Origin: Bugula neritina | Taxonomy: Eukaryota; Animalia; Bryozoa | DNA: 64,000 nt | Direction: 5' to 3' | Assembly: GCA_964035545.1 (NCBI GenBank) | Contig: OZ037765.1 | Location: 19,840,995-19,904,994 of the forward strand | Shown: in pieces, positions 9,701-17,747 of the stretch | Numbering within the stretch: the first letter of the stretch is position 1 | Layout of the letters: the number at the start of each line of letters is the position of its first letter | Position numbers and translations under genes: made by a program | The notes under the pieces: model-generated | Databases searched by the model: none | Seen by the model: the letters and a program-made list of their open reading frames with translations, nothing else | What the model was told of the DNA's origin: nothing

Positions 9701-10414
9701 TAGAGAATCTACTTATTCTTATAATCAATGAGACTATTTAATACTTATCTTGTAGTCATGGCAACTACTACAGTGTATCCATCTGCCAAGGACAACTCCT
9801 GGGAATACATGTTTGGATCACCTTCAGCTACTCTGGCGGTGTTAATAGCCATTCCAACTATATTTATCGTAATAGTAACAGCAGCAATTGCTGTTGCTGT
9901 AAATAAAAGAAACAAGAACACCGGGACCCAGCAAAGACGTCGGCCGAGTAACATGTTGAGTGATCATGAAGTCGCAGTTCCACTAAACATGAATGCAAAT
10001 AACGGCAGCTACACTGGACAGCATACGAGCAGCCGTGGAAGCAACGGAAGTTACAATAAAGTTCCATATAATAATGGAGAATATAGACATGTAGCTGAGA
10101 AGCACCGAACTCCTTCATATAGCAAATCTCCGCCTCTTCAATATTCACAATACTTGCAGTCTGATGGAAGTTGTAGGTCAACACTGCAGTATCAACCAGT
10201 GGGTCTGATGAAGCCTATACCAAATTACATGATAGATGCTGGAGATAGTGACAGTCAGTTCTCCAGTGTATCTCACACGCGACCACAATATATGAACAGC
10301 TCAAGAAACCCATATGATGACAGAGACATTCACTCTGATCCTGCTGCTAGCAGAGTTGGGGGCCATCATTGTCCACCCCCTCCACCTGGTAGCTACTACA
10401 GCGGCCAATGGTAG
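3743..10414 (+). CDS. FGFRL1: Fibroblast growth factor receptor-like 1 (nou-darake-like): 3 Ig domains, TM helix, kinase-less tail; 5' partial
   Basis: Exons 3743-3991, 4923-4985, 6111-6389, 7698-7816, 8659-8896, 9756-10414, all GT-AG and in phase. Ig3 (CKVRSYSRPSITWLK...GAYLNKLL...EDAGVYVCLGMN) closely matches FGFRL1 Ig3 as I recall it (CKVRS..P.IQWLK...GSYLNKLL...DDAGMYICLGAN). TM LAVLIAIPTIFIVIVTAAIAVAV, then a stop with no kinase domain. Signal-peptide exon not located. Confidence 0.9.
7169..7219. repeat. Perfect 24 bp-stem hairpin in FGFRL1 intron
   Basis: GTCTTTTATCACAGTTTGGTAACT-ATA-AGTTACCAAACTGTGATAAAAGAC. Confidence 0.9.
7844..7979. mobile_element. MITE family C, degenerate copy (FGFRL1 intron)
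   Basis: TGCAGTAGTATAGAAATTTTGATAGCCCAAGTTCTTTAATT...AATTTCTCCATCACTGCAC aligns by eye to the 55079 copy. Confidence 0.6.
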
Positions 10415-11239
10415 ACTCTGTAGCATTCTGTATATATTTACTTTTCTACATTGTATTAGTCACTGGTGTGTGAAGTCTTCTAATAATCTAAGTCATGTAA
10501 AGTTACAGAGTCAACCTCAAATCTTATTTTACTGTTAAATTATATATTAGAGCGCAGTGCACCAATTTGTAATTGCAATAGTCAATGTTTCTATAATATA
10601 TTTTCATTGTTATAGCTAGTCCTTTTTTGTATTTTATTTCTGATAACAATCATTTTCCTAATTTCTCTGAGCACACTTTATGCCAAAGAAATTTTTATAA
10701 ATATATTATTGTAACACTATAGCTGGTTTTGAACAATTTTTAAATTTCTGTTTACTAATTTGATATTTTTGTGATAATATAGGAGTTATAAATGATTATT
10801 AAAAAATCTTGTTACTAATTGTACTGGATCCCTTACACTAACTACTTTCACCGATGACTACTTTCTGTGTACAGCAATAGTGCATTTCTCCCAGACAACT
10901 ACTCTGAGATGCTTTCGAGATAAAATGAGCAAACTAATGCAAGTTTAATAGCCCATTGCTATCATGATTGAGAGCCTTACACAGTTACATCTTTGCAAAT
11001 GACTTTTCACTACATTAAATATTAGATGCTGTTGCATATCATAACCAAAATACAACATTTGATCAACTTCTTGGTCACACTACATTTTATTGCTTATAAA
11101 TATAAATCATGTCGCAAACTCTTTTGTATATGTTGTATAGTACATTTCTAAAAATCATATTACAATGCAACTTCTGGTTTGGAACCTATTCTTGGACTAC
11201 TCTTCTAACCAACACAGCCATTAGCACTAGTCGCTGGTG

Positions 11240-14200
11240 TCATGTGAGCAGAGGCATTGTTTCTTCTAGAATCATCTCAAGTATCCCAGATTGAGAAGTG
11301 TTCTAAAATTAGACACACCATTAATCATGACAAACCACTCCACCTATTGACTTGTGGTAAAGAAGCATCAACTAGAAAGAAAATTATTTAGAAATGGATG
11401 AAAAATCTTTCACAGCTGCACTGGTTTTGCGTGCATAGCAACTACATTTAGTATTCTGCTATTCTTTTTCCATTGATTATAAACTACGCAAGTGTGCATA
11501 AATTTGAAATGTGTGGGGAAGTGCTAATGCATAATAAAGTATGGAACATGTCTTACTAAGACTTGATGTCACTATAGCCAAGTGGACTGGTAGTATCAAC
11601 ATCGTCAAACCATATCAAAGCAACATTAAGAGTCATTTCAAAATCACTATGATAATTTATGATCTTAAGAATTATAATTCTCCAATGTTTGCTATAAAAC
11701 ACTGAGCTAATTAACCATAGCAACTGTCCCAAGTCTTTGATATCAGAAACTCGTTATAAGAAAAGGAGACAACTCTATATAATTTTAGACTAAACCAGGT
11801 TCAAAAGGTCAAATATGCAAGTAACTTGATTTGTGAGACAGCTGCATTAGAAAGAACAGTTTTTTTATTTATCACTCTACCATATTTAGACAAAACTTTA
11901 TGTAAAATTCGGGTGGCGTCACATAATTTTTAGTTAAATAAAGAAAAGTCAGTGAAAAACAAAAAAAAATATACTTGGAATTTTAGCACAATACAAGCAG
12001 CAGGATTGAGTTAAGTGGCACACAGGAAGTTAATAACTATGAGTCTAGTTTTCACCTGCAACTCGGCTATAGAATGGTTGGTAAGTTTGAGAGACAGAGA
12101 AATGAGGTCTGTACGGCTAACACTAGCTAAGTACTGCTCTAATGACAATGAGGATGCCTTTGATTGGTCCAACCAAACAACATTTGTAGCAGTTTTTCCC
12201 AGCTTCTGTCCATCTTCAGTTACAACTAATGGAACAGTAACTCCTGTAAATAATTAGCAGAATTATAGGATGGTGTAGAAATGGAGAAGTCACCTTAGGC
12301 TTTCCCAAAGTTTAGATATTAGCATATTTATTAGATTACCATTTGCCAAGAATATTATATAATATACAGATGTAAACATAATTGAAGCCTTCATTCATAA
12401 TAAAGAAATAAAACAATACAATATTAAAATGTTCAAGTTATTTACTAATACAGATTCTTTTTTAGTAAAACATCAAGCTCAGTTTGAAAAGAAGGAGAAT
12501 TAACCATCACGCCATGCAAACACATCCTTCAAAAATTCTTTAGTCCATTTTTGCTGATTGAAAATGATTTCATTATACATTAACATTATGAAGCACACTC
12601 TAGATTTGAGTAGAAATAATAGAACAGTTTACCATGCAAGATATAGAATTTGCAAAAGCATTCATCAATCTTAATTAAATTAGATGTTTCGTAAGTATTC
12701 CATAAAATTATACAAAACAATTACCAGTCAATAGGAAAATCCCAACTGACAGATGACAGAATGAGAAGAATATTTATTAATTACTCACAATATATAAGAC
12801 TTACAGACATTTAGATTATCTAATGCGGCTTATGATGAGGTGATTGAATTTTAAACTTTTTGTTTCTTTAAGAGAAGCCAGGTGTTGAGAACGATCTTAA
12901 ACCTCGAAGAAATGATGACACCTAACTAAATCTGTCAACTTATTTTTAAATTATAAATTTTTAGCATAATTAGCATAAAAAATAATTAACAACAATAAAT
13001 ACATATTGCCGCTTTCTACAGTAGGTGAGGTGGTAAAGAAAGTAACTATAACTACAAGCAGAGGGCTGACTCCGACTTTCTACCTGCTAAAGTAGGAAGC
13101 TGATGAAGACTTCTCCACACAAAGTCATAGCCATCTTCGATGTTACCAAGCTGGTCATGCCCACCCACCTGAAATATAATAACACTAAAGGTTTTAGAAA
13201 ACAAAATTTATGATTCGGTTACTGATATGCTGTAAAGATTAACTCTGTAGCATCACACACCCATAGAAAGTACACTAGTATAAAGACAACGTAGCATACT
13301 AGTCCTTGTAAACAAACAAGAATCACTTTCTATAAGCTGAGCAAAAAAAATTAAAATTATAGTTGCTTTCTTCTTAAAACAAACTATAAGCTTACTGTAT
13401 ATGCTACACAATGAAAAAAGCATATGAAGAAAACATACAGATTAACAATCTAAAGAATCACTATGTATATACAAACAAGGTTAAGCAAAGGTAAGTACAG
13501 TAGCCTATTAGACAGAATAAGTGAGTAAGTTATGAAATGTAGGTGATGTATCAGTTACTCTGTCCATTTACACTTATTTCTTTCTTAATTTTATGCTAAC
13601 CATCTCCTTGTTTAAAGTCACTATAACCATGATAGTTGTCCATTATTTATTAGTTCATTTGCATTCATAACCAAATTACTTCCCAAAAAAACAATGGAAA
13701 AAAGATCTGAATAACTAAAAATAATGAAGCACCTGCACCCATCGGAGGAAATGTTCAATAAGCAATAATTTTTAAATATATGCTAAAATTGGTAGACTCC
13801 AGTTATTAAATATGAGTGTGAATATGATTTGATGAAAAATTATTTATCAATAAAAGCATGGTGAGGAAAACTTATTCCTTCTTCACGGTTTCAGTAAAAT
13901 CTAAGGAACCATTTTGATGTTGAATCCTAGATAAACAGCTGGAACATTTCAGGGCAAAAAGTACAGTGAAAATATGCAAAATTATGTGTTCATGTGTTCC
14001 CGTAGCAATTTAATTGTATTAATACATATATTATGCAGTATGTAGTAATTGTAGCAATATTTATGTGGCCAGTCTCGTATCTGCACAAAATGGACACTAT
14101 ATAGCACAGTTTTTTGAGTTAGGTAGCATAGTAGGGAGGGGGGGGGGTCAGACTCATCCTCACCTGTATGCTGCAACCATAATGTTTATACAAATACAGC

Positions 14201-17200
14201 CAATCATACGATTGGAATGTCTGATACACAAACTCCGTGAATCTCATATCTCCATCTTTGCCCTCGAGCCTTGACTTGACACTGCATTAGTAAAAGAATG
14301 CTAGATATTAGAGTAATGCTGAAAGAGCCTTATATTACAAGATAAGAGAGGGAAATGGAGAGAAAGCATAGCCTGGTTTGATGTCACGACTCCCCCTAAG
14401 GGCATAGAGCAATAAATAACTACTTCCATTTGACACTTCGACTAAGCAATAAAGTTATATTTAACAGCTGTGCAATTCATACGCATTACTGACACTGGAA
14501 TGCCTGGAGAGATTTTTTCCACAAATGCAGATTAAAACCACTTTTGAGTAATTTATTACATAATAATGATAGAATAAGTGACCAAAGTTTATCTGAGAAA
14601 GAGCTGAAGCTTAGACAAAGACCTGGTTAGATTTGAGAGACAGTAGGAAGTGATGAGAGAAATTATAATTATGTGGTAATACTTTGTACAGAATGCAGCC
14701 TAGAGATAAGGAGGTAGGTGCAGTAATGGAGAAATTGAGAAAAGCCTGTGTTCTAGATTGAAAACTCAGCAAAAAAGTTATGTTCTCAAAAGAACTTCAA
14801 CACGCGTTCCAAACCAAAATGTAATAATAGAATTAAAGAACTTAGGCTATCTCAATTTCTCCACTACTACTCCTGAGTGGAGACAAGTAGATGAAAGACT
14901 TGAGCAGAAAGAGTATAGGACATTGTCAAGTCCTGAAAAACCTAAATCCAAATCTTGGTACATACAATTGAATAACTTTAGATTAAAACAATAAAACAGA
15001 AGTGAAATATATGCAATCTCATCGTCTAACCTAGATTCAGCATTACCAACAACGGAGTATATGATAGAAATTATACATGCTGCAGTAAAGAGAGAATATG
15101 GCTGAATATGATAGCAACTTTTAGAACAGCATTTATCAAAAAACAACCCTGTGGTTTGATTATAGCAACTAATTTCTATAGAAAAAAGCCTAATGATACT
15201 GTTTGAAACTCAATATTAAAACAGTTGGGCTTAATTTTTGCAACCAATATTGAATAAAAACCTTTGCAAAAAACAATAATTTAAGTGCAGTAGTGGAGAA
15301 ATTGAGTTAGCCTTAGCTCTGTAATTGTCTTAATAAATTTTGGGTTTGGGGTGACGGTTGAAATTCAGCATAACTTTTTTTGCTATATTTCTAAACTAGA
15401 ACACAGGTTTTTCACCATTTCTCTATTACTGCACCAATCTCATTTGATTGAATTGTGTTAACACCAATAGTTAGGAGTGAAAAAGCACAGCAGCGGCAGT
15501 GTGTCCTGAAACTGTATATTATGACTTAGCTCGATCACCTACACGGCTCTCTGAAACATGTCAACCAGTTTGAACTCTGAGGCTATGCTATCGGTGTACT
15601 GGTCAAGTGTCATAGTGCTGTACCACTCCTTGTTGTTCAGCACACTGAAATCAAAATAGGAAACCTTGCAGCTTGGTACATAGGCCTACTGAAGTACTGA
15701 CAAATGTTTAAAGGAAAGAGGACACAACTTCAAGTAGAAGAATATGCTGCAATACAAAATAGAATTAACAGGTTTATAATTATTATTGAATACATTGTAT
15801 GGAGCTATATGAGAGACATAGTAAACTTTAAAAGGTTCCACTCAGAAAATCACAATTAAATTATCTCCTATGCAAATGCCATTTCAGAAACTCAATACTG
15901 GCTAATAGCTGTTATGAAAACATCCACATGTACAACGATACACTATAAGCTTTTAGGAAGGATTTTGCCTGGAAGCTGTAACATAATTATTTAAAAATAT
16001 ATTAATGCCAAATGTCTGCACTACAAGCACTATAAATAATATATGCTGTAAGATTACCTAAAACTGCCGGAGTCTATGTTATGTTTATCAGCATAGCGCT
16101 GGAATATATTAGTGATTTGTTCCTGTAGAGCAATTGAGTTTCTTTCCAGCTGCTGATGGCTGATTAAAACTCTGTCCTCGTCTTTGCCTTCAGGATCTCC
16201 AAGTTTAGCTGTCACTCCCCCAATCTACTAGGAATATTGGAAAAACAAGGCATGTCAATTAAAAATAATTTTACCTAGTTAGTACAAACACTTCATCTAG
16301 AAAAACTAGCTAGATTAAAAGTCATAAGTATTTAGTTGCATCAGACTTTTAGCTATCTGCTGTTCTAGAACTAACAAGTCCAGCAATAACAACTAGATTC
16401 TACTGCTAGAAAGCAAGTTGCAAACATATCCAGACCTGTAAAACCAGCTTCATAAACAGTATGCAGTATGTGGGGGGGGGTTTAGAAACACAATAATAGA
16501 ATATTATACGATACACACTATTAGTCTAGAAAAAACATTATTTTTCTGATTGAAGAGAATGTGGTAAATGTAACAACTCACTAAAGCTATCACAGGAAAT
16601 CCATTCTTAGCGAGAGAGAGGAGAACAGATAGGAGAGTCATGTGACCTAGATGTAAACTGTCAGCTGTCGGGTCAAATCCACAGTAATACGCAGGAGCGT
16701 TGTTTTGTATGGAAGAAAATGTGTCAAATATTCTACAACAATTGAAGATGAATACACCAAGTTGCGAAGAATGACAACTCCCAAATGTAGAAACAGCGCA
16801 TTATTATTGCAAAGAATAAAAAACCAATTATACACTGCTTATGCACACTGTTTCCTGTAAATATTTACAGTAACCTCTATATATTATAAAGTAACACATG
16901 GAAAAATATATTACAGATGACTCTAAATTCATCAATTTTAAGCTTCTCAGTGCACAACTAAAATGTGAAAGTGCCCAACTTTTGAATGGTTCAGCATAAT
17001 AGAGTTATCCACTCTTTAAAAATGAATGTCTACTTTTGAAAATAGAATCTGGCATCATGTATTCATTATTGCACAGCACAACTAGCCTAATCTCACCACT
17101 ACCACCAAAAATTTACTGTATGTTGAAAGAAGTATATACCAAATTGTAGACAAAACCCGTATAAAATATTTATTCTATTAATTAAGCGATTTCAAAAATT

Positions 17201-17747
17201 TCTTTCAGGTTAATTATTAGCCAATCAATAAATAAGCTTCATTTTCCTATTAATCACCAAGTTAATTTTGTTTTCATATAATATAAATAAAAAGAATGAA
17301 CGTTACTTTACAGAAAAACAGATTAGGGAGCTGTTCACAAATCTTTAATATTCATTATGACTAGGAGTCCATCTGTGTATAACTGATTACAAATTTGCCA
17401 CACTCTTCAAAACGAGAGATAAAAGTATAAAGTAGGCTTGCACACATGAGGATGCACCGCATTGATAGCATTCAACTAACTTTAACAGATGTCTGTGTTG
17501 CTTTGTTTCTTCTAGCCTTAAATCAGGAGTTCGACGTCTTATTGTGACTCGACCTTTTCCCATTTTCTTTTCAGGAACTGTAATGCATTGTATCATGCCT
17601 CTCTCTATCATCTGGTGAATGCATTTCATTCTTAAAAGTATAAAGCAGACATTGTTAAACTGATTGTAATACGCAGCAATCAAGTAAAAAGGATAAGTGA
17701 AAACACAGTACTAACCTTGATGCCGTCATTAGAACTTGATTCTGCAT
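11240..17747 (-). CDS. YARS2: Tyrosyl-tRNA synthetase, bacterial/mitochondrial type (YARS2-like), ~351 aa, apparently lacking the C-terminal S4-like domain
   Basis: Minus-strand exons 17747-17716, 17630-17481, 16732-16582, 16224-16058, 15644-15543, 14281-14164, 13168-13084, 12243-12056, 11302-11240, phase-consistent. Motifs [15 protein letters not shown] (HIGH), [42 protein letters not shown] (KMSKS-like). Mostly missed by the ORF track. First and last exons are less certain than the core. Confidence 0.85.
14717..14873. mobile_element. MITE family C copy (YARS2 intron)
   Basis: GGTGCAGTAATGGAGAAATTGAGAAAAGCCTGTGTTCTAGA...TCTCAATTTCTCCACTACTACTCC; reverse orientation relative to the 55079 copy. 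Confidence 0.78.
15283..15435. mobile_element. MITE family C copy (YARS2 intron)
   Basis: GTGCAGTAGTGGAGAAATTGAG...CTAGAACACAGG...TATTACTGCACC; same orientation as the 55079 copy. Confidence 0.75.

Follow-up and report, generated by a model that had tools for sequence, protein, structure and literature searches.

A probably shortened mitochondrial-type tyrosyl-tRNA synthetase gene in the bryozoan Bugula neritina

The stretch of DNA analysed here, referred to as the window, comprises 64,000 nucleotides of the bryozoan Bugula neritina (GenBank assembly GCA_964035545.1, contig OZ037765.1, positions 19,840,995 to 19,904,994 of the forward strand). Its minus strand carries, at window positions 17747-12056, a split gene that is, judging from its sequence, the single nuclear gene for a bacterial/mitochondrial-type tyrosyl-tRNA synthetase (TyrRS) of class Ic. 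The Rossmann-fold catalytic core is complete and the KMSKS loop is kept, and we consider it probable that the gene encodes a truly shortened mitochondrial TyrRS, common to a bryozoan clade, from which the canonical C-terminal module has been lost. An earlier note on this DNA had offered two explanations for such an enzyme, namely, a mitochondrial TyrRS whose recognition of the anticodon has been cut back and a repurposed Tyr-adenylating paralogue. The first fits the present results, including the sole bacterial-type locus, a ratio of non-synonymous to synonymous divergence (pN/pS) of 0.10, the presence of a mitochondrial tRNA-Tyr gene and the undetected C-terminal module.

The family assignment was obtained from profile, structure and cross-species matches, and all homology searches were made exon by exon. 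The Pfam profile PF00579 (tRNA-synt_1b; cut-off 21.1 bits) matched exon 7 at 23.5 bits, exon 2 well above the cut-off and exon 5 slightly below it (Table 1). The exon-wise scores of TIGR00234 (tyrS) were 42.4, 20.6, 20.3 and 15.8 bits, the cut-off of 113.8 bits being that of a whole protein. Human mitochondrial TyrRS (2pid) was the best match of exon 2 in the PDB, and the PDB ranking of exon 7 was headed by fungal mitochondrial TyrRS, followed by 2pid and then bacterial TyrRS. The HIGH signature reads HLGH in exon 2 and is aligned with HVGH of 2pid and HLGH of Escherichia coli TyrRS, and the KMSKS loop reads KLGKT in exon 7 and is aligned with KLGKS/KFGKT of mitochondrial and bacterial TyrRS. 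The Y of YxGFDPT, the Y..Q..D motif and GGHDQ are also present and align with the canonical tyrosine/ATP-contact motifs; the residues that we take to contact tyrosine were assigned from established TyrRS knowledge. The catalytic core that the earlier note had read from the letters, with HLGH, KLGKT and the tyrosine/ATP-contact motifs, is therefore present in the PDB and tblastn alignments.

Scans of the genome assembly (216 Mb, 321 contigs) with PF00579 and TIGR00234 found one bacterial-type TyrRS locus only, the one in the window, and no second or full-length bacterial-type TyrRS, thereby answering the question of a complete copy elsewhere that the earlier note had raised. The other matches in the genome were three tandem cytosolic-type TyrRS genes on contig C6, two class Ic loci on C4 and C9, which are probably TrpRS, and two small contigs carrying in-frame TAA codons. 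Because the genome holds no full-length bacterial-type partner, the locus can be taken as the orthologue of mitochondrial TyrRS and not as a side copy. The same result bears on repurposing, in which a tyrosine-adenylating, core-only enzyme would serve a non-translational role and tRNA-Tyr would be charged otherwise, for example by an imported cytosolic TyrRS. Core-only synthetase relatives with new functions are known (GluQRS/YadB, EpmA, HisZ), and the cytosolic-type TyrRS occurs in three tandem copies on another chromosome; however, YadB, EpmA and HisZ, which the earlier note had named as parallels, coexist with a full-length enzyme of the same amino-acid specificity, and no full-length bacterial-type TyrRS is available here of which the gene could be a paralogue. 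In addition, the KMSKS loop and all tyrosine/ATP contacts persist, as one would expect if the enzyme still works as a synthetase, and no presequence is visible on any of the three cytosolic copies, all of which start MAGLSVDEKY... with an in-frame stop just upstream. Repurposing is accordingly quite improbable in our assessment.

Most animals have one copy of the cytosolic TyrRS. The three copies found here (YARS1-like) are located at C6:2518624-2521844, 2565869-2568981 and 2573508-2576314 (L029-L031), share 82-96% DNA identity and agree fully at their N-termini (MAGLSVDEKYALISRNLQ); of the three, only L029, the first, showed an EMAP-II-like tail. The two small contigs carry class Ic synthetase genes that lack introns and contain 7-8 in-frame TAA codons (C101:16438-17169 and C199:10706-11554; L001, L002, L011).

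Exon 7 is the last recognisable coding sequence of the gene and has orthologous open reading frames (ORFs) P0002, P0004-P0007, P0009 and P0010. The earlier note had described a collapse of conservation after VWLD, which was not borne out: homology continues for 37 residues beyond this motif into the helical domain, reaching position 242 of 292 in PF00579 and position 283 of E. coli TyrRS, although the SP[FY]xxYQ[FY] motif itself is degenerate. Of the alpha-helical anticodon-binding domain, the first helices remain, and the two that follow the degenerate motif are recognisable and conserved among relatives; this helical remnant is approximately 38% identical between the relatives' genomes. Within exon 7, the SP[FY]xxYQ[FY] and FTF motifs are replaced or degenerate, and one of the two canonical aspartates of the helical stretch is replaced in the clade. 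The missing part consists of the helical remainder and the S4-like domain, which together amount to approximately 140 residues in canonical enzymes; the canonical TyrRS sequences P0021, P0023 and P0027 do carry the S4-like domain.

A local hidden Markov model (HMM) covering the 197 positions after the KMSKS motif was used to search for this part, and was built from 19 full-length or C-terminal TyrRS sequences. On both strands of the window and on L019-L026, only model positions 1-50, corresponding to exon 7, were matched, and everything else scored 4.7 bits or less. The rest of the helical domain (PF00579 approximately 243-292) was not found further on in the window or at the relatives' loci, and no S4-like domain (PF22421/PF01479) was found at the locus, at the relatives' loci or genome-wide; five relatives' loci were searched, covering 0.2-10 kb downstream of exon 7. 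Pfam analysis of 13 downstream stop-free pieces returned nothing beyond an irrelevant sub-threshold match, and the HMM scan past the convergent neighbouring gene, extended to the whole window on both strands, revealed no 3' exons. The comparison of tRNA-synt_1b with S4 that the earlier note had proposed thus gave PF00579 on exons 2, 5 and 7 and no S4. Its statement that approximately 825 bp remain before the convergent stop without an S4-like exon also agrees with our data, in which 826 bp separate position 11240 from the stop of the convergent gene at 10414 and neither Pfam nor HMM searches find S4-like or SYY_C-terminal sequence there.

The sensitivity of the local search was evaluated with left-out sequences cut into 40-residue fragments. 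Fragments of the helical remainder scored 26-33 bits and those of the S4 core 10-40 bits, and exon ORFs of other animals, none of them used to build the model, reached 20-21 bits; fragments of the linker (model positions 91-130) scored approximately 0 bits, so a linker segment is undetectable by the HMM. A canonical helical remainder and S4 core, even if split over exons, would have been seen locally by the HMM. At the scale of the whole genome, a C-terminal profile spanning 148 positions (A1) and PF22421 (SYY_C-terminal) together yielded only one match, of 14.6 bits. This match to PF22421, at C5:16574119 (E 5), contains an internal stop and is not S4-like on reading, and was dismissed as noise. 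A split synthetase, in which another gene would provide the C-terminal module in trans, has nothing direct in its favour beyond the trans-acting tRNA-binding modules known for other synthetases; with this one interrupted match as the only yield of the A1 and PF22421 scans, it is very improbable.

The reconstructed part of the gene consists of eight exons (exons 1-7, including exon 1b), all bordered by GT/AG and consistent in phase; joined, they make up 993 nt (331 codons) with no stops and no frameshifts. Exon 1 leaves approximately 11 residues before the mature-like N-terminal helix. The earlier note had proposed a spliced ORF of approximately 351 aa in nine exons, a length equal to the 331 codons plus its own 20-codon last exon. 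The ninth exon of that model (11302-11240) is a candidate that lacks cross-species conservation, and the length of 351 aa is provisional. As the earlier note had also observed, read-through of the exon 7 donor meets a stop after 14 codons. Several comparisons addressed the sequence downstream of this donor. All-against-all blastp among five genomes singled out no terminal exon, and the pattern of substitutions and indels relative to the sister genome, which belongs to the Bugula neritina complex, likewise singled out none; the top summed Smith-Waterman score of the real downstream peptides was 123, compared with tops of 118-128 for the opposite-strand controls. Two candidate tail exons were considered, and their differences from the sister genome are mostly non-synonymous. 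The candidate at 11895-11872 (7 codons, with AATAAA 3 nt past the stop) shows 3 non-synonymous differences and its stop moves in the sister genome (L019), and the candidate at 11302-11240 shows 2 differences from L019 (1 synonymous, 1 not) and no conservation in relatives; neither is endorsed. The simplest reading of this 3' end would be a short, unconstrained tail exon.

The gene is under purifying selection. Across exons 2-7, 25 of the changes between the window and the sister genome are synonymous and 9 are non-synonymous, corresponding to a synonymous divergence (pS) of 0.146 and a non-synonymous divergence (pN) of 0.014; the gene is therefore not a pseudogene, as the earlier note had argued, and orthologues in six other genomes agree with this conclusion. 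At least six related genomes carry an orthologue that corresponds to this gene exon by exon. The counterparts in L023-L025, which among the relatives cover exons 1b-7, show 41-68% identity and have clade-specific substitutions in common (GGVT.[KQ]LGDP[EQ]GK, GG[HY]DQ.GNIE.GY and VVTE.G.KLGKT), and the exon structure is common to the more distant relatives L021-L026. An HMMER scan of 1.84 billion representatives with exon 7 recovered exon-sized ORFs of related genomes, 45-90% identical, but for this clade no protein of full length. When 5.8 billion proteins were searched for words of exon 7, the result was only the sister ORF P0010, and no transcript-derived fragment across the exon 7 junction.

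The missing canonical C-terminus could also reflect decay into a pseudogene, or an artefact of assembly in which the 3' exons were lost. The synonymous divergence from the sister genome also points in this direction, being 0.146 in the TyrRS exons (12056-16732) and 0.073 in the last exon of the neighbouring gene (9728-10414), a comparison based on a small sample; the value of the TyrRS exons is also above the 4-7% divergence of the introns. The selection ratio and the eight exons free of stops and frameshifts argue against decay. Two independent sister contigs from JGI metagenomes, which bear P0010, are 89-93% identical to the window at the DNA level across exons, introns and neighbour and show the same structure and neighbour, and the exon structure is kept in more distant relatives. 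A pseudogene or artefact is hardly credible on these data.

A lineage-specific feature is found at the other end of the protein. Exon 1b (17481-17630, minus strand) encodes a basic insertion of approximately 20-30 residues after the N-terminal helix and ahead of the YCGFDP strand; the spacer from the helix to YCGFDP is approximately 44 residues, compared with 12 in the canonical relative P0039. The basic stretch is 46% identical in L024, where RRTPDLR is identical, and the relative sharing the insertion has approximately 50% overall identity. No PDB match was obtained for the basic insertion.

The presumptive substrate was examined on the mitochondrial contig C321 (15,248 bp, 29% G+C), in which the tRNA order is as in the published B. 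neritina mitogenome (AY690838). ARAGORN in mitochondrial mode predicted a sole tRNA-Tyr(GTA) at C321:14429-14486 on the plus strand, 58 nt long and with a D-replacement loop, that is, predicted to be D-armless; the inspection of mitochondrial tRNA-Tyr structure that the earlier note had recommended therefore indicates a reduced molecule. In the Thermus enzyme, the long variable arm is bound by the C-terminal domain, in which Asp423 recognises position 35, and Asp259 of the helical domain of bacterial TyrRS reads G34 (PMC1934993). If the enzyme is truly shortened, the TyrRS of this clade would have lost the module that holds the anticodon arm and the variable arm and reads position 35, and its mRNA would terminate with a tail exon that is short and under no constraint. 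Tyrosine would still be activated by the enzyme, the reduced tRNA-Tyr would be charged mainly via acceptor-end contacts, and the conserved basic insertion with RRTPDLR may help to hold the tRNA. Tentatively, and with less than even confidence, we suggest that a clade-wide mini TyrRS which lost its arm-binding module and gained the basic insertion may charge the D-armless 58-nt tRNA-Tyr by acceptor-end recognition alone, constituting a co-reduction of synthetase and tRNA.

Several points weigh against a shortened enzyme and its reduced substrate. The exon 7 donor is kept at the same position in seven genomes (CAG|GTGAAA, GAG|GTTTGT, AAA|GTAAGT, CAG|GTCTGT, TGT|GTAAGT and CAG|GTAAGC; GTGAAA is shared by the window and L019), and an intron and at least one further exon therefore certainly follow exon 7; tblastn of all downstream pieces against the relatives singled out no such exon. 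A fast-evolving or non-homologous C-terminal domain over several small exons is possible. Most of the relatives' contigs are short, and the genome-wide scans, being exon-wise, are weak for short diverged pieces, a 15-bit match having an E value of approximately 5; the A1 genome scan was run without a positive control. Finally, the published mitogenome places trnV(-) at the site of the predicted tRNA-Tyr and proposes a 45-nt armless trnY elsewhere. Under either annotation, the mitochondrial tRNA-Tyr is reduced according to prediction.

The foregoing bears chiefly on the alternative that the enzyme is not short at all, in which the donor leads into a series of small exons whose product, a C-terminal tRNA-binding region, has diverged, or is non-homologous, and evolves too fast to align. 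Beyond the certain further exon, the room before the neighbouring gene (approximately 1.6 kb here and 4-10 kb in L023 and L025) would accommodate such a tail, and the retained helical part has already strongly diverged from the SPFxxYQF and FTF motifs. Against it, the exon 7 remnant and the other exons can still be aligned between the same genomes at the identities given above, whereas no downstream peptide rises above the opposite-strand controls and the stop-free pieces are at most 65 codons long; both candidate tail exons differ from the sister mostly at non-synonymous positions, and the stop moves in one. A full-length enzyme with a fast-diverged tail is therefore unlikely, and a shortened mitochondrial TyrRS remains the reading that we prefer.

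With respect to the mitochondrial annotation, ARAGORN placed a tRNA-Val(TAC) at C321:11448-11505 (L027) on the plus strand, where the published annotation has trnE(-). Since the anticodons GTA and TAC are reverse complements, the published strand at 14429-14486 looks doubtful, as does the published 45-nt trnY. Six mitochondrial tRNAs were predicted to be short (58-62 nt), and the two displayed, Tyr and Gln, were drawn D-armless. A full-length nuclear copy of COX1 was found at C6:11174072-11175412 (L016), scoring 433 bits compared with 435 for the mitochondrial contig and having the same nine TGA codons; on account of the shared codons and the nearly equal score, it is either a recent nuclear copy of mitochondrial DNA or mitochondrial sequence inserted at the wrong place. 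The assembly also holds COX1 genes of other organisms, on C17, C73 and C214.

The locus is bounded by a convergent immunoglobulin (Ig)-domain receptor gene, which the earlier note had labelled FGFRL1; on the orthologous contig, the domains observed were of Ig type only. The convergent arrangement also occurs in L019/L020 and probably in L023. At L025:11825-14305, a same-strand homeobox gene (RQVKVWFQNRRMKRKK) lies downstream of TyrRS in place of the convergent receptor gene; the synteny is therefore not universal. An Rfam scan of the window gave 0 matches. The features of the locus are listed in Table 1.

Table 1. Features of the TyrRS locus in the window (window positions)
Feature	Position	Strand	Description and basis
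Exon 1	17716..17747	-	ATG at 17747; 32 nt (10 residues + 2 nt); donor AG|GTTAGT; based on splice signals and phase fit to exon 1b only
Exon 1b	17481..17630	-	N-terminal helix, then lineage-specific basic insertion; donor AA|GTTAGT; match to L024 718-861, E 5e-15
Exon 2	16582..16732	-	HIGH motif ... PVIAL; PF00579 31.6 bits; human mitochondrial TyrRS 2pid, E 5.5e-8
Exon 3	16058..16224	-	tblastn to full-length TyrRS; TIGR00234 positions 74-117; orthologous exon in L024
Exon 4	15543..15644	-	Ends ...MFQRA; donor GT|GTAGGT; orthologous exons in L024 and L025
Exon 5	14164..14281	-	VKSRLEG..., tyrosine-binding Y..Q..D; PF00579 20.1 bits; cross-species exon comparison
Exon 6	13084..13168	-	GGSDQ replaced by GG[HY]DQ throughout the clade; tblastn and orthologous exons
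Exon 7	12056..12243	-	KMSKS loop, VWLD, first helices of anticodon-binding domain; PF00579 184-242/292; E. coli TyrRS 222-283
Phase-0 splice donor GTGAAA	12050..12055	-	Position kept in seven genomes
Last intron, terminal exon(s), 3' untranslated region	10415..12049	-	Longest stop-free piece 65 codons
Last exon proposed by the earlier note	11240..11302	-	20 codons; candidate only, based on AG and open frame
Convergent Ig-domain receptor gene, last exon	9728..10414	+	228 codons; bounds the locus

By its catalytic features, the gene can be placed in the bacterial/mitochondrial TyrRS family, and two features of the family's architecture, a complete helical domain and an S4-like domain, were not found. 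The closest known counterpart is human YARS2 (2PID/3ZXI), which has in common with the bryozoan gene a nuclear location, the bacterial-type class Ic core, the HIGH and KMSKS motifs and the tyrosine-binding residues, and which is the best PDB match for exon 2 and the second best for exon 7. YARS2 has a complete helical anticodon-binding domain and an S4-like C-terminal domain, whereas in the bryozoan TyrRS homology stops after the first helices, SPFxxYQF is degenerate, GGSDQW has become GGHDQL and the basic insertion has been added. No report of a shortened YARS2 was found in the literature.

A laboratory counterpart is the fragment 1-319 of Bacillus stearothermophilus TyrRS (1TYD, 4TS1), which, like the bryozoan gene, has the catalytic domain without the C-terminal tRNA-binding domain and aligns with exon 7 at 217-266. 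In bacterial-type TyrRS, removal of the C-terminal part abolishes tRNA binding and tyrosine activation survives; the engineered 1-319 enzyme of Waye et al. (1983) reportedly makes Tyr-AMP and neither binds nor charges tRNA. That fragment is a truncation made in the laboratory and includes the whole helical domain, whereas the bryozoan gene occurs in nature, apparently as the cell's sole mitochondrial-type enzyme, and can be recognised only up to a point approximately 40 residues earlier. GluQRS/YadB, EpmA/PoxA and HisZ also consist of a synthetase catalytic domain without an anticodon-binding domain, have a full-length synthetase alongside and act on other substrates; the bryozoan gene differs from GluQRS, EpmA and HisZ in having no full-length bacterial-type TyrRS alongside.

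A precedent for loss is provided by the mitochondrial AlaRS of Caenorhabditis elegans, which retains only a residual C-Ala domain (PMC8887476). A tRNA-binding C-terminal domain has been lost there, as proposed for the bryozoan enzyme, in a phylum known for truncated mitochondrial tRNAs, and we infer that the domain loss is linked to the tRNA truncation. The AlaRS case involves another synthetase class and domain and is founded on biochemistry, whereas the bryozoan case is drawn from sequence only. If the bryozoan enzyme is truly shortened, it would represent a second case, independent of nematode mitochondrial AlaRS, of the loss of a tRNA-binding domain alongside shrunken tRNAs. As a natural, selected and sole-copy enzyme, it would reveal how little tRNA recognition an animal mitochondrion can manage with, and would also offer a small natural scaffold for studies of acceptor-only recognition.

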